IMG/VR virus record: IMGVR_UViG_3300042367_000228
Coordinates: 248,001 to 312,000 of that record
DNA: 64,000 nucleotides
Direction: 5' to 3' (one strand)
Shown here in pieces: positions 9,875 through 40,811 of this stretch (the first letter of the stretch is position 1; every line of letters starts with the position of its first letter). The notes below the pieces were generated by a model. It was given only the letters and a program-made list of their open reading frames with translations. It did no database searches and had not been told where the DNA came from. The translations under genes were made by a program, and so were the position numbers.

Positions 9875-10495
9875 CTAATTCTCATCACCCATTGTGTTGA
9901 AAAAATCATCTAAAAGCATATTAATAGTACGGGTTGATACGCTTCTAGATTTTAACAATTCAGCTTCGGCAGGTGTAATAGTGGCTAATTTTTTAAAATC
10001 TTCAACTATGAATGCAGTCCATTTACCTTTCGGAATTCCGGTAGGTTCTTTAAAACCAATACTCCTATCTAATGAAATCTCAACTCGATCTCTTCCTTTA
10101 TACATACTGTTTGGAATAGCAAGACAGTAAAATTCGTCCGAATATTTAGAATAACATAAAGCTCTAATTAAACCAGTTTTATTTTTAAGACCACTAATAG
10201 CAATAGAATTAGTCCATTCATCTTTTGCAATATTATTGTTTCTAAAACAACTTACTGCTTTTTTAGCATCGGACAAACATGGATAAAAATCATGTCCAAC
10301 TTCGGCAACACGAACATAAGCCCCTTGTGATGTTATCGCTAACGCATTTTCTAATACAGTTTCAATTTGAAGATCGCCAGTTTCTACTAGTTTTCTATAT
10401 AATGCAATTTCGTACTTTGGTGCATTTGGCCAACGATATGGTGCTAAAAAATCAAAAAATTTATAATCTTCGGGTGTAACAAGTGCTGTACTCAT
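9875..10495 (-). CDS. Hypothetical early protein
   Basis: 206-aa ORF behind a sigma70-type promoter. Confidence 0.7.
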   Translation of the reverse strand: MSTALVTPEDYKFFDFLAPYRWPNAPKYEIALYRKLVETGDLQIETVLENALAITSQGAYVRVAEVGHDFYPCLSDAKKAVSCFRNNNIAKDEWTNSIAISGLKNKTGLIRALCYSKYSDEFYCLAIPNSMYKGRDRVEISLDRSIGFKEPTGIPKGKWTAFIVEDFKKLATITPAEAELLKSRSVSTRTINMLLDDFFNTMGDEN

Positions 10496-10564
10496 AATTT
10501 AATTTTAATGTATAATGTGTTTAATAGATTTAATGTATAGATACTCTTTGTATCTAATGTCTAT

Positions 10565-10592
10565 ATTATACAGTAATTACTTCGATTGTCAA
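10565..10592 (-). promoter_or_regulatory. Sigma70-type early promoter
   Basis: TTGACA-16 nt-TATAAT. Confidence 0.7.
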
Positions 10593-11474
10593 TCAGTTAC
10601 TCAATTTTTTAACAATATATTCAACCATCTCTCCTGCTATGTTAGTACCACAATAATGATCAAAACCGTTAAATCCAGGATTTGAATTAGCTTCACATAC
10701 TCTAAATCCGCGATTATCAAATAATAGATCAATACCTGCTATTTCTAATCCTAACGCTTTAGCGGTAGCCAATGCAATTTCTTCTATTTCGGGAGTTACA
10801 GTATAAGGTTCGCCTTTACCACCTATTGTAATGTTTGCACGAAAGTCGCCTTCAGGAGCAATACGTTTCATAGCTCCGAGTACTTTATCTCCTACTACAA
10901 ATACTCTTAAATCTACACCAGGGTAATCATTAAGATATTCTTGTACTAGTAGTTTTTTTTCATTATCTAAATTTTTAAGGAATTCGATTAATTTATGATA
11001 TTCTTTTTCTGTTTGACACAGATATACACCCTCACCGAAACTACCAACTAATACTTTTATTACGCAAGGAAATCCTATATGTGTTGCGATTAAGTTGTGT
11101 GTAATTGGAAAGTGTACTAACATTGTTGTCGGTACTGCTATGTTAGCGTTTGAAAGAATTTGACCAGTGTGGAATTTATTTTGTACTATATGTATACTGT
11201 TGCTCGAGTTAACGCATGGGATGCCTAGTAATTCAAAATACCTAATTACAGCTAATTCAACCGAAGTGATACCGGCACCTAATCTTATTAACACTAGGTC
11301 AGGGAGAGAAAACTCTTTGCCGTCGTATTTGATTGACTCACCAATGATGATATCAAAGTTAGAAAATTGACATACAGATGCGTCGATGTTAGAATCCATG
11401 AAACTAATAAGTAGTTTACTAGTTTCATAGTCTATTGTAGTTTGTTTTGTAAGAATTATAACAGAATGTTTCAT
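10593..11474 (-). CDS. rimK: RimK-family ATP-grasp ligase
   Basis: NKFHTGQIL, GSFGEGVYL, QEYL, DLRVFVVG, FRANITIGG, AGIDLL, EANSNPGF. Confidence 0.88.
   Translation of the reverse strand: MKHSVIILTKQTTIDYETSKLLISFMDSNIDASVCQFSNFDIIIGESIKYDGKEFSLPDLVLIRLGAGITSVELAVIRYFELLGIPCVNSSNSIHIVQNKFHTGQILSNANIAVPTTMLVHFPITHNLIATHIGFPCVIKVLVGSFGEGVYLCQTEKEYHKLIEFLKNLDNEKKLLVQEYLNDYPGVDLRVFVVGDKVLGAMKRIAPEGDFRANITIGGKGEPYTVTPEIEEIALATAKALGLEIAGIDLLFDNRGFRVCEANSNPGFNGFDHYCGTNIAGEMVEYIVKKLSN

Positions 11475-35363: not shown

Positions 35364-35364
<1 letters not shown>
34588..35364 (-). CDS. Virion fibre-associated protein (Mtd-N-like domain)
   Basis: IRRATAQLWTDVNPILSDGELAFEIDT...KLGDG. Confidence 0.65.
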
Positions 35365-37448
<2,084 letters not shown>

Positions 37449-37496
37449 ACTGTATTTATTGTATGCTAAACAAAAGATCAATCAGTAGTTATGTGA

Positions 37497-37742
37497 TTAG
37501 TACATGCGTTTACGATTTGCAGATACTGGATTTGCTTCTTTTTGCAGTTTTTTACGATAGCGTGCTTTAGCTGCACCTGCTTCTCGTTTACGTTTCGTAG
37601 TTGGTTTTTCATAAAACTCTTTTTTACGTAACGTTTCTAATTTTCCAGAATCTTCAACTTTGCGCTTAAATCGTCTTAACGATTGTGTAATGTTTTCATT
37701 TTCGCGCATTGTTACTTTAACTCTATTCTGCGTTGTTATCAT
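37497..37742 (-). CDS. rpsU: Ribosomal protein bS21
   Basis: RENENITQSLRRFKRKVEDSGKLETLRKKEFYEKPTTKRKR. Confidence 0.92.
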   Translation of the reverse strand: MITTQNRVKVTMRENENITQSLRRFKRKVEDSGKLETLRKKEFYEKPTTKRKREAGAAKARYRKKLQKEANPVSANRKRMY

Positions 37743-38133
37743 CGTCTTCCTCTTTGTTGATTTGTTCTACAATCCAATCTAAATCAAATATTCTATTTTT
37801 AGAGATTAAATTGTAAGGTGTTAGTTCGTCATTAGTTATATAGTATGCATTAGGATGTGTAAGCATAAATGTGACAAACGATTTTGTAATCGGATCACAA
37901 TTATCAATATCGATAATTACTACTGCTACTTGATTTGTAACACTTAGTAACCAATCAATATCTGCCTCATCAGTGTCATAGATAAAAATATTAATATCTT
38001 CATCGCTTTCGCCAATAATTGCATGAAACTGTTCTAGTACATGCGTTGATGGTTTTACTAACAAATAACCAACATCTAAATTAAAAAATTTATCAGGAGG
38101 GGTAATAACCGTAATTCTTCCTAATGGATTCAT
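37723..38133 (-). CDS. Hypothetical protein
   Basis: 136-aa ORF (ITPPD motif). Confidence 0.65.
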   Translation of the reverse strand: MNPLGRITVITPPDKFFNLDVGYLLVKPSTHVLEQFHAIIGESDEDINIFIYDTDEADIDWLLSVTNQVAVVIIDIDNCDPITKSFVTFMLTHPNAYYITNDELTPYNLISKNRIFDLDWIVEQINKEEDDDNNAE

Positions 38134-38141
38134 GTGACCTT

Positions 38142-38648
38142 CTATGTGGTAATTAATTTTGCCTTGTATTTATCAGAGAAGGACTTGACCGCTAATGATA
38201 CTTTCTGTACCCCAGCTATTCCAATTGCTTTTGCAGCAGCCTTTGATAAATCAATAATTCTACCTTTAGAAAAGGGACCTCTATCATTTATTCTAACTAA
38301 TACTGTTTGGTTATTAGCTAAATTAGTTACTTCAACTATAGTTCCAAATGGCAATGTTTTATGTGCTGCAGTTAGTTCTTTTGGACTAAAATATTCTCCG
38401 TTTGCAGTTTTAGGTCTGCGTCGATATCTAGGTCCAGATTCGTAACCATACCAACTAGCTATACCTTGCATTTCGTTAGATGTATGTGCTGATCTAAGTC
38501 TATGCTTATAATGCAGGTGTTTAGTTTTTTTATGTACACTGTGTTGTATTGAATGATTGTCAGTCGAATGTTTAGTAGCTGCATCTACTGGAGCTACGGT
38601 GGTAATTATTGAGAGGGCAAGGATCCCTGTTATTAGTGAATTTTTCAT
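38142..38648 (-). CDS. rlpA: RlpA-like DPBB lytic transglycosylase
   Basis: [39 protein letters not shown]; start moved to MKNSL after SD AAAGGAG. Confidence 0.9.
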
Positions 38649-38654
38649 TTTTTC

Positions 38655-38890
38655 TCCTTTCACTTGGTGTGTATTAAAACAACTACACATTACATTAAGG
38701 GAGTAAACTGCACGAGGTTCTTCGAACCCATTTTGTTCGTGACGTCTTCTCCATCAGCCACAACATAAACTGCATGTTGCACCTTTGGCAAGCCTGGCTT
38801 CCCGAATTTCGCGGGTTTCTACTTTGGCCAAGACTCGCAGGATTGATTACATCTCTCAATCCAACTATCTTAGTTTCTCTCGAAACATAT
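38655..38890 (-). ncRNA. Long structured 5' leader of rlpA (candidate cis-regulatory RNA)
   Basis: GC-richer ORF-free region with at least six hairpins, e.g. GTTTC-GAGA-GAAAC, GGATTGA/TCAATCC, CCCG-CGAAATT-CGGG, CAACAT/ATGTTG, CACGA..GGTTC-GAA-GAACC-TCGTG. Confidence 0.6.
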
Positions 38891-38963
38891 AATATATAGC
38901 ATTGAACTTTAAAATTCTGTTAAAAAAGTGACTTTTTAACGAATTAAACTATACTATTTGCAC

Positions 38964-38992
38964 ATTATACGCTTGTTATTATATTTTGTCAA
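38964..38992 (-). promoter_or_regulatory. Sigma70-type promoter upstream of the rlpA leader
   Basis: TTGACA-17 nt-TATAAT. Confidence 0.75.
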
Positions 38993-39029
38993 GCAAAAAC
39001 TACTAAATATAAGATAATAGGAGTTTTTA

Positions 39030-40016
39030 ATGAAAATACAAGATTTAATGGAAGGATATATTGCTGATTCACTTCCAGATTTAATTAATCACGCAAAATC
39101 GTTAATTATAATGTATACGAAAACATTACCTGAAATAGTACACAAATATGATTTCTCAGTTAATGATCCATATAATCCAACTGAACTTGGATTAGCAAAT
39201 AGAGATATCAATGCATGTAAATTACAAGTAGGTAGTGTTAGATCAGTCTGGTTTACTAACAATTATTTGTCAGTTACTAAAAACAGAGCAGGTACCGGAA
39301 TGCAAGGCGGCAAATCTGCACGCGGTTTGAAAAATGCGTTAGTTACCTTATCAGAAATTCCAGAACTACGTAAAGTACACGGTTTAAATCGTTTAGCGCA
39401 TTTAGATGTAAACATTAATCCAAATAATAAAGTTCAAGCAACTGTATCTCAGCGTGTAAAAGGAACTGCACCAAAAGAAGCTGATATTCAAACATATGGT
39501 GAATTAATGAGGCATCTTGAAAATCTTTTACCAGACGTTATAAAAGCTATTGCTAAAGTGGCTAAGCCGCAGGATTTAGAATCTAGTTTTTTAAATGCAG
39601 AAGAAGTATTCGGAATAGGTGTTAGACTTGAAAATGCTATTGATAGATGGGAAAGTGTAAAAGGTACTATTCCAAAAAAATACGAAGGCGGAACTAGTTA
39701 TAAAAAACAAGGTGACGCATTAGTAGCTACACACAAAAATAAAGGTGCAGACCTAGGTAAAAGTGATATAATGAAACCGGCTGAAAAGCCTGTTAAGAAA
39801 CATGATACACATTCTCAAAATATGAGTGCTGCTCAAGACGCAATTAATCAAGGGTTTGAAGTACTTAAAAAGAATGGTATTAAAGATCATGAACTACATG
39901 CAATTAGACAAAAAGTTCAAAGAAGTGATAATCAACTAATGGCGTTAATGCAAGTATTCCAAGAATTTGGAATCAATCCAAATCCGTTAATGGAAGCTTG
40001 GTTAAAAACATATTAA
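39030..40016 (+). CDS. Hypothetical late protein with MKIQDLME tag
   Basis: TAAATA at 39004-39009, SD AGGAG. Confidence 0.75.
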   Translation: MKIQDLMEGYIADSLPDLINHAKSLIIMYTKTLPEIVHKYDFSVNDPYNPTELGLANRDINACKLQVGSVRSVWFTNNYLSVTKNRAGTGMQGGKSARGLKNALVTLSEIPELRKVHGLNRLAHLDVNINPNNKVQATVSQRVKGTAPKEADIQTYGELMRHLENLLPDVIKAIAKVAKPQDLESSFLNAEEVFGIGVRLENAIDRWESVKGTIPKKYEGGTSYKKQGDALVATHKNKGADLGKSDIMKPAEKPVKKHDTHSQNMSAAQDAINQGFEVLKKNGIKDHELHAIRQKVQRSDNQLMALMQVFQEFGINPNPLMEAWLKTY

Positions 40017-40133: not shown

Positions 40134-40811
40134 TTATTTTGGTTTTATCGTAATTGTTATTGTACTTTCTGAACTAGTATCTTTACCTTTGTTTAAGGTA
40201 CCGCCTGAATCTTTTATTTTAAATCCTATAGCTGCATGTTGAGTACCATTTTTAGATCCATCTGGATAATACGCTAACAACGATACATTAGCTGATGGAA
40301 CACTTTGATTAGCTTTAACATTAGCTTTTCCTAATTTAAGTCTTCCGACTTTTGGTAATTTTGATATAATAACTGCGCTAATGCTGTTATTATCAATATC
40401 TTTAAATTTAAAATCAGATTGAGTAAAATGTTTAACAACTCTTTTAGTTATAGTAAACGCATTAGCGATTGCAGTCGGTGGTTCATTAGCAGAAACCGAC
40501 GATGTGCTATCGCCGGCATACACGTTATCACTGCCTGACGAAATTGTTCCAGCATCTGCTTTATCAGTATCTCTTGCAATCGGTATATTATTAACAAACA
40601 CAGTTGCAGATCCAGCTTTAATAGTTTCTGTGTGATTTACACACTTGTCACCTACTTTATGAGTATGAACTTTTATAGCATCTCCTTTTCTACAAACACC
40701 AATGTTATTAACAAATACATTAGTTGAACATTTGTCGGTGTTAGTAGTCGCAGTGCATAAGTGACCTGTTGATACTGTATCTTTACCTTTACCTCTTGCA
40801 ACTCGTGGCAT
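40134..40811 (-). CDS. PAAR spike-tip protein (gp5.4-like) with C-terminal Ig/cadherin-like extension
   Basis: MPRVAR, NVFVNNIGVCRKGD, GSATVFVNNIPIAR, SGSDNVYAG, followed by NEPPTA...DFKFKDIDN. Confidence 0.8.
   Translation of the reverse strand: MPRVARGKGKDTVSTGHLCTATTNTDKCSTNVFVNNIGVCRKGDAIKVHTHKVGDKCVNHTETIKAGSATVFVNNIPIARDTDKADAGTISSGSDNVYAGDSTSSVSANEPPTAIANAFTITKRVVKHFTQSDFKFKDIDNNSISAVIISKLPKVGRLKLGKANVKANQSVPSANVSLLAYYPDGSKNGTQHAAIGFKIKDSGGTLNKGKDTSSESTITITIKPK

Follow-up and report, generated by a model that had tools for sequence, protein, structure and literature searches.

The DNA analysed here, called the window, is a stretch of 64,000 nucleotides corresponding to bases 248,001–312,000 of an IMG/VR phage genome that is 372,016 bp long and has direct terminal repeats. 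The promoter, the leader and its operon are on the minus strand of the window, and their positions are collected in Table 1. The locus contains an operon that begins with an rlpA-like gene, the product of which is predicted to consist of an N-terminal signal peptide and a lytic transglycosylase domain. A gene for an acidic protein and the gene for ribosomal protein S21 (rpsU) complete the operon. It is preceded by a long leader, and we propose that rlpA is the gene under the control of this leader. A collagen-repeat tail-fibre protein (705 aa, 35364–37481, minus strand) is encoded on one side of the operon and a PAAR-domain protein (225 aa, 40134–40811, minus strand) on the other, so that the hydrolase locus is surrounded by tail and baseplate genes and does not belong to an obvious lysis cassette. 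Neither a regulator nor a holin was found among the neighbouring genes in the PHROG annotation.

Table 1. Positions of the leader, its structural elements and the surrounding genes, in window coordinates unless stated otherwise
Feature	Position	Strand	Remarks
Divergent 328-aa gene	from 39030		opposite direction to leader operon
Sigma70-type promoter, TTGACA-17-TATAAT	38992..38964	-	12/12 match to consensus
Leader	about 38957 to 38649	-	~310 nt; no conserved ORF
Clade-specific 5' stem-loop	38896..38957	-	between promoter and family core; consensus fold of 8 close relatives
Conserved core of leader RNA (span of model R1)	38668..38895	-	~230 nt; 283.7 bits to R1
P2	38873..38886	-	5-bp stem GUUUC/GAAAC, 100% conserved; GNRA-type loop, GAGA here (38881-38878)
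P3 hairpin, variable loop	38840..38862	-	compensatory changes in 5-6 of 6 pairs
P4/P4b	38788..38838	-	near-invariant long helix, conserved internal loop, CCCG/CGGG hairpin
P5 hairpin, variable loop	38756..38784	-	compensatory changes in 10 of 12 pairs
AUGGAGA	38748..38754	-	5' strand of P6 base; invariant; proposed anti-anti-Shine-Dalgarno
P6-P8 arm	38700..38752	-	base GGAG/CUCC, AGAC/GUUU, CACGA/UCGUG, terminal GGUUC/GAACC hairpin
Tail CUCCCUUAAUGUAAU	38689..38703	-	putative anti-Shine-Dalgarno CUCC and 3' strand of P1; nearly invariant
P9 hairpin	38669..38688	-	between tail and linker; 5/5 pairs covary
Linker CCAAGUGAAAGGAG	38654..38667	-	Shine-Dalgarno GGAG at 38657-38654
rlpA-like gene	38142..38648	-	168 aa; start codon at 38648; DPBB_1 PF03330 1.5e-23; phrog_7930 1e-29
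Downstream operon genes (136-aa and S21)	37497..38133	-	
136-aa acidic protein	38133-37723	-	no family match; directly 3' of rlpA
Ribosomal protein S21 (rpsU)	37742..37497	-	Pfam PF01165 5.4e-15; third gene of leader operon
Permuted beta-type tmRNA	242596-243017 of phage genome		outside the window; corresponds to locus L195, 314-740

An initial annotation of this DNA had described a consensus sigma70 promoter followed by a long, GC-richer leader with many hairpins and no open reading frame, and both parts of the description are borne out. The promoter is also kept in close relatives, and transcription would start near position 38957. The GC content of the leader rises to 0.49 (38700–38849), compared with 0.24–0.36 around it, and the minimum free energy of −81.3 kcal/mol corresponds to a z score of −4.1, with none of 100 shuffled sequences folding as well. 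A protein-coding reading of the leader was considered and rejected. The small open reading frames in it are broken by indels of 1–2 nt in the hairpin loops of close relatives, so the constraint is not on a protein.

The extent given for the leader was only partly right. The core recurs throughout the RNA family described below, but the first 60 nt form a hairpin that is specific to the clade of the window and lies outside the core. Among 8 close relatives, this 5' stem-loop shows compensatory changes at 4–5 pairs. Family members that precede a SleB-type hydrolase gene lack it, and their −10 box is located ~16–20 nt from the core. A promoter-like site scoring ≥10 is present within 130 nt upstream in 49 of the 94 family members. 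At the 5' edge of the core, a CUAUAUA(W) block (38896–38902, minus strand) is conserved family-wide, although helix P1, its proposed partner, is weak. The block resembles a −10 box or a T4-late-promoter-like box.

The phage genome contains 38 promoters of the form TTGACW-N16-18-TAYAAT, with 32 on the minus strand, including that of the leader. So large a set of strong host-type promoters is unusual for a phage of this size. Many of the 38 occur with TGTATAAT or AGTATAAT. The genome also encodes seven tRNAs and a permuted beta-type tmRNA (RF01850, 90.4 bits; RF04321, 101.9 bits); a stronger beta_tmRNA match of 182.9 bits was obtained at 10383–10796 of locus L052. The sequence AGGAG followed by ATG at a distance of 4–9 nt occurs 131 times in the phage genome, compared with 34–62 times in controls of the same composition. 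We infer that the host uses Shine-Dalgarno sequences and is probably betaproteobacterial. In the freshwater bS21 phages reported earlier, S21 is found among head genes and the predicted hosts are Bacteroidetes (PMC9723584), so that both the gene context of S21 and the inferred host differ here.

A leader RNA family of phage and metagenome contigs

Relatives of RlpA and of the divergent gene were taken from IMG/VR for comparison. The leader core is the best-conserved part within 6 kb, and the leader is 87–100% identical in every syntenic locus. This includes the genome that carries loci L013 and L014, in which RlpA and the divergent protein are 69% and 50% identical to the window versions, respectively. 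Compared with L014, from the most distant syntenic genome, the two 100-nt bins of the core (38700–38899) are 94% and 100% identical, whereas the bins of rlpA are 53–84% and those of the divergent neighbour gene (39100–39799) 36–60% identical. The leader region is conserved far beyond chance and far beyond its neighbouring genes.

A covariance model of the core (R1; 38895–38668, 231 positions, 68 pairs) and three pattern scans identified more than 130 loci, all on phage and lake metagenome contigs. They comprise 94 distinct core sequences, and the length of the element is about 210–260 nt. A scan of IMG/VR using a pattern from the P6 arm produced 27 new loci, 24 of which match R1 at 100–153 bits, and a scan of JGI metagenome contigs with a P6-arm pattern produced 34 loci, all matching R1. 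The third scan, again of IMG/VR but with a pattern from J2/3 and P4, corrected the ascertainment bias of the P6-arm pattern; it returned 105 stretches, and all 66 new loci among those listed match R1. Over the candidates of the three scans the R1 scores range from 45 to 290 bits. Among the members from the J2/3–P4 scan, CCAAUGGAGA is the commonest form and CUGAUGGAGA a minority variant. The R1 search of the phage genome and related genomes revealed one copy of the RNA per genome and no extra copies, and the more distant RlpA loci L017–L019 are without the RNA. About half of all positions are nearly invariant over the 94 sequences, including those in junctions and internal loops. There is little doubt in our view that this is a genuine, functionally constrained family of cis-acting RNAs.

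The leader family was previously uncatalogued and occurs in large freshwater phages, on phage and metagenome contigs. None of the Rfam 15 models matched at gathering score over the 64-kb window, nothing relevant appeared at E ≤ 10 on positions 38400–39200, and nothing at E ≤ 1 on seven divergent members. The nearest matches, STnc420 (E 3.3) and PreQ1 (E 6.1), are far below gathering score, and one of the two is outside the leader. In GenBank phage records, BLASTN gave no match for the 1-kb locus, the window leader or a SleB-type leader, and no cultured phage bearing this RNA was found there. A set of 185,579 species genomes of bacteria and archaea was scanned with two patterns and gave no matches; both patterns were narrow and used the minority CUGAUGGAGA variant, so that absence from bacteria is only weakly shown. 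No description of the family was found in Rfam 15 or in the literature searched.

The gene that follows the RNA encodes a SleB-like Hydrolase_2 protein for 55 of the 94 distinct sequences and an RlpA/DPBB protein for 23; one truncated locus has no such gene, and for the remaining 15 the contig ends. Eight examples of the Hydrolase_2 proteins gave Pfam matches at 1e-21 to 1e-26. The two hydrolase families are unrelated, and members of both have an N-terminal signal or membrane segment as judged by sequence. In 78 of the 79 distinct members with downstream sequence, the RNA runs directly into the Shine-Dalgarno sequence of the hydrolase gene, with a fixed spacing of RNA, Shine-Dalgarno sequence and start. 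P9 is followed by CCAARUSAAAGGAG (present in 83 of 97 extended sequences), then by 5–9 nt and the start codon.

Common to all loci is a synteny of RNA, hydrolase, optional genes, 136-aa gene, S21 and tail fibres. The order hydrolase, 136-aa gene, S21 is kept in 17 of 30 long loci, and in several SleB-type loci S21 is as far as 4.7 kb downstream with many genes between. The family marks a single locus in a single, diverse phage lineage, where the leader stayed in place while one hydrolase gave way to another. Since all members come from one syntenic locus, the association with two hydrolases may be the outcome of one exchange of genes and not of recruitment on several occasions. A location in the 5' UTR of related, partly non-homologous genes is a generic trait of riboswitches, and it is found here with all members in one syntenic locus.

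In loci L120 (6226–6457, minus strand) and L136 (5103–5334, plus strand) the RNA is kept up to the tail, but P9 has lost its 3' strand, and linker, Shine-Dalgarno sequence and hydrolase gene are gone. A convergent terminator-like hairpin is located after the RNA in both. The locus has probably decayed in these two cases.

Parts of a 2.7-kb stretch of the operon region are present in four metatranscriptome runs from three studies, in the form of assembled contigs from which strand, 5' end and a reliable level are not readable and in which DNA carry-over is possible. Contigs of close relatives from two studies cover the leader at 38649–38899 (5 differences), 38674–38838 (3 differences) and 38654–38828 (8 differences, estuary sample), and such contigs are also found on rlpA, the 136-aa gene and S21. 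In two lake runs (X21 and X22) there is no contig on 38947–39757, which contains the promoter and the divergent gene; this uneven coverage argues for RNA over DNA carry-over. One loose contig end carries a SleB-type linker, which indicates that other members of the family are present in the same RNA.

The first of these contigs covers the leader alone (253 nt), as might be expected if the element were an independent stable ncRNA, trans-acting or processed from the mRNA, that merely happens to lie upstream of the hydrolase gene. The ends of the contig coincide, however, with points of strain divergence, as expected for unitigs. The retention of the RNA without the hydrolase in L120 and L136 would also suit such an RNA, but in both loci the 3' strand of P9 is missing and the locus looks decayed. 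The absence of a terminator between the RNA and the Shine-Dalgarno sequence and the fixed spacing up to the start codon in 78 of 79 members both argue for a part of the mRNA, and an independent ncRNA is very improbable.

Conserved and covarying helices

The comparative alignment of related leaders, a check proposed with the initial annotation, shows that the structure is conserved. Alignment A5 contains 48 distinct sequences and has 93.4% of its cells paired, with double changes at 32 pairs and in 295 cells, compared with 86 after shuffling and 25–36 in slid controls. Alignment A6, which was ascertained independently, contains 46 distinct sequences with 91.3% paired and shows double changes at 31 pairs and in 253 cells, compared with 68 after shuffling and 18–38 in slid controls. 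Both alignments were fitted to the model, and a plain MAFFT alignment of 89 sequences was used as a model-free check. In this alignment the top mutual-information pairs are those of P9 and P3, with P9 the strongest.

Covariation strongly supports P3, P5, distal P6, P8 and P9. Compensatory changes are found in the distal pairs of P6 and in P8, and the base of P6 is invariant. P4 and P4b are 93–95% paired, and the changes in them are compatible one-sided ones only (GC/GU, UG/UA). P2, P4, P4b and the P6 base are too conserved for a covariation test. P1, which would close the upstream domain, is weak, with ~80% of cells paired and almost no covariation in either A5 or A6. The many G–U pairs show that the RNA is read from the same strand as the hydrolase gene. 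A structured domain backed by covariation, with conserved nucleotides in its junctions and loops, is a further generic trait of riboswitches that the family displays.

An extended P1 of 14 bp in the window clade, which would disrupt P9, was rejected as a feature of the family; its 5' block is conserved while P9 varies. A terminator-like match on the plus strand (38716–38728), GGTTCTTCGAACC followed by a T-run, is the reverse complement of P8 and not a terminator.

Several pairings suggested in the initial annotation can be compared with this fold. The hairpin with a GNRA loop corresponds to P2, where nearly all members keep either a GNRA loop or GCAAA; across the family the loop is GCAAA in 45 sequences, GAAA in 16, GAGA in 9, GUAA in 8 and GCAA in 7. 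No tertiary or receptor partner of this loop was found by mutual information. A proposed GGAG/CTCC pairing is also present in the consensus fold, between 38752–38749 and 38703–38700, and is compensated in L166. A long-range GTCTT/AAGAC pairing, by contrast, is not supported, GUCUU being invariant and part of P4 while AAGAC varies and is part of P6. The segment thought to resemble the P2 arm of c-di-GMP-I riboswitches turns out to be a hairpin inside P4 in which the stem is invariant and the loop variable, and it has no Rfam match.

A cyclic-dinucleotide riboswitch related to c-di-GMP-I had been suggested on the basis of this segment and of the gene downstream. A relationship to c-di-AMP/ydaO, the riboswitch class with the classical link to cell-wall hydrolases, was considered as well. 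Cell-wall hydrolase genes are indeed known targets of ydaO and related motifs (PMC5737381), and the leader contains a GNRA-capped helix. The covariance-model search, however, gave no match to c-di-GMP-I in the 64 kb, in 38400–39200 or in seven divergent members, and the leader matches no other Rfam 15 model, including those for c-di-GMP-II and c-di-AMP. With five or more helices in ~210 nt, it is also unlike the two-arm GEMM-I fold. Membership of these known classes is therefore most unlikely, but a cyclic dinucleotide could be the ligand of a new fold. From the original proposal of a riboswitch or an independent ncRNA, what stands is a conserved, structured, cis-acting leader of a lytic transglycosylase gene with riboswitch-like anatomy. 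The cyclic-dinucleotide class is set aside for want of an Rfam match, and fusion to the Shine-Dalgarno sequence makes the independent ncRNA less likely.

The tail, the linker and a proposed Shine-Dalgarno switch

The tail, P9, the linker and the Shine-Dalgarno sequence follow the upstream domain. The tail can pair with the linker and the Shine-Dalgarno sequence around P9, and its CUCC has an alternative partner in the internal GGAG (38752–38749), with the 3' part of the tail on the 5' strand of P1. The first of these helices has 15 Watson-Crick or wobble positions, which are 98.8% pairable in a set of 78 distinct sequences, and both CUCC pairings may partly be artefacts of the invariant GGAG and CUCC. 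AUGGAGA, which contains the internal GGAG, is invariant even among the members from the scan whose pattern omitted that motif.

Sequence changes in the two helices are frequently matched. A U–G pair in the tail–linker helix is changed to U–A 25 times. In L142 and L172 an extra U in the tail is matched by an extra A in the linker, and in L163 the Shine-Dalgarno variant AAGGGA pairs perfectly with UCCCUU in the tail. L166, the most divergent member, has the internal GGAG:CUCC swapped to GAGG:CCUC. About ten sequences have U and C in place of the facing nucleotides A (38696) and G (38661). When mapped on an upstream-domain tree, this joint change represents ~4 independent events and none opposing, but the sign test reaches a p of only about 0.125 and A·G is not a standard pair.

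In the RlpA-type members a further hairpin can be drawn, in which AGUGAA of the linker (38664–38659) pairs with UUCACU (38640–35) in codons 4–5 (MKNSL), with the Shine-Dalgarno sequence and AUG in its loop. The MKNSL codons in this stretch (38635–38664, minus strand) are conserved at the nucleotide level.

By constrained folding, the energies of the two pairing states of the tail differ by 3.1 kcal/mol on average (−1.5 to +8.6), and the states are close to isoenergetic. In the window clade the state with a free Shine-Dalgarno sequence is favoured by 3.5–8.6 kcal/mol, which may leave the site constitutively open in this clade. The leader might then be a constitutive structural element without switching, a 5' domain that stabilises the mRNA or enhances translation and presents the Shine-Dalgarno sequence. 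The predicted ensemble of the window clade, in which the Shine-Dalgarno sequence is left unpaired (paired probability 0.05–0.12), fits such a role, as does the position of this sequence and the AUG in the loop of the AGUGAA/UUCACU hairpin. Yet about half of the positions are nearly invariant, far more than a stabilising hairpin needs, and the complementarity of tail and Shine-Dalgarno sequence is kept through sequence change. A purely constitutive element is improbable on these grounds.

The anatomy, as far as it can be read from sequence, is that of a translational switch, with a putative anti-anti-Shine-Dalgarno, an anti-Shine-Dalgarno and a Shine-Dalgarno segment. The two pairings would alternate, in the direction set out below, in response to a presumed effector. 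That the leader controls translation by masking of the Shine-Dalgarno sequence seems to us rather probable.

Interpretation and comparison with known systems

In the mechanism that we propose, host RNA polymerase would transcribe the leader of the rlpA/136-aa/rpsU operon from the consensus sigma70 promoter. The leader RNA would fold into a multi-helix P2–P8 domain, in which the junctions and internal loops are very highly conserved, and a 3' switch module made up of tail, P9, linker and Shine-Dalgarno sequence would come after it. Pairing of CUCC with the internal AUGGAGA would close the upstream domain and leave the ribosome-binding site free, whereas pairing of CUCC with the GGAG of the Shine-Dalgarno sequence would mask the site in an extended, irregular hairpin built around P9. 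An effector, either a small molecule or a protein, would bind or stabilise the upstream domain and so gate translation of the secreted peptidoglycan hydrolase. We regard a riboswitch-like translational control leader of the hydrolase operon, gated by a putative effector, as the best reading, with a probability of roughly 0.6. It builds on the observed RNA family with its conservation and covarying helices, its fixed place before two unrelated hydrolases and its presence in RNA libraries.

Translation could also be controlled by a phage or host protein that binds the conserved domain of the leader. Possible binders are the co-transcribed S21, the acidic 136-aa protein, a repressor similar to RegA and a GGA-binding protein of the CsrA type. 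Downstream linkage of S21 and the 136-aa gene is seen in 17 of 30 long loci, and in the ribosome S21 adjoins the anti-Shine-Dalgarno sequence of 16S rRNA. By inspection, the tail resembles the 3' end of 16S rRNA (CUCCCUUA compared with CCUCCUUA), only over CUCC..UUA, and there are two GGA motifs, one of them within the Shine-Dalgarno sequence. In several SleB-type loci, however, S21 is separated from the leader by many genes and over 4 kb, and the ribosomal-protein leaders known so far tend to be shorter, with less sequence conservation. We consider a protein-binding leader of this kind unlikely.

Within the riboswitch-like reading, it is tentatively suggested that the leader represents a phage-specific riboswitch class, in which P2–P8 would be an aptamer that binds a small molecule; a product of cell-wall turnover, a marker of the nucleotide pool and a signalling nucleotide are conceivable ligands. 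To our knowledge, most of the riboswitches found in phages to date are copies of host classes. If the suggestion is true, the level of a metabolite during infection would decide when the secreted lytic transglycosylase is translated, and the phages would gate the remodelling or lysis of the cell wall through a metabolite sensor of their own making. This large and very highly conserved phage leader, associated with two peptidoglycan hydrolases that are unrelated to each other and organised around a putative switch that masks the Shine-Dalgarno sequence, would then constitute a new class of regulator. The locus makes it testable how large freshwater phages set the timing and amount of an exported enzyme that cuts the cell wall. 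The 94 sequences, the covariance model and the mutational targets (internal GGAG, tail CUCC and Shine-Dalgarno sequence) are a starting point for ligand screens, reporters and structure determination.

Structured leaders of cell-wall hydrolase genes have been described in bacteria, where the orphan lysM, M23 and NLPC_P60 motifs are without an identified ligand; these and ydaO occur in Firmicutes, Actinobacteria, TM7 and Prevotella (PMC5737381). The leader described here is similar to ydaO and the orphan motifs in being a conserved, structured 5' leader of peptidoglycan-hydrolase genes. It differs from them in that it is found only on phage and metagenome contigs, and it does not match the ydaO model RF00379.

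The adenine riboswitch of Vibrio vulnificus add is a translational ON type and a three-part switch of anti-anti-Shine-Dalgarno, anti-Shine-Dalgarno and Shine-Dalgarno segments. As proposed for the phage leader, the closing helix of its upstream domain competes with the masking helix for a shared strand; both are without a terminator and have the start codon within ~20 nt. The domain of the phage leader is much larger, with ~210 nt and five or more helices, and it shares neither sequence nor fold with any catalogued aptamer in Rfam 15. The c-di-GMP-I (GEMM-I) riboswitch, RF01051, also occurs in some phages and likewise has a GNRA-capped helix. The phage leader is distinguished from it by P2–P9, five helices around a junction, and by a GNRA loop for which mutual information points to no receptor partner.

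A simpler arrangement is known from phage T4, where a hairpin masks the ribosome-binding site in the early mRNAs of gene e (lysozyme) and soc, and a late promoter inside the hairpin relieves the masking. In both systems, complementary sequence upstream can hide the translation start of a phage cell-wall enzyme in transcripts from early-type promoters. In contrast to T4 e and soc, the putative mask is preceded here by a large, conserved multi-helix domain.
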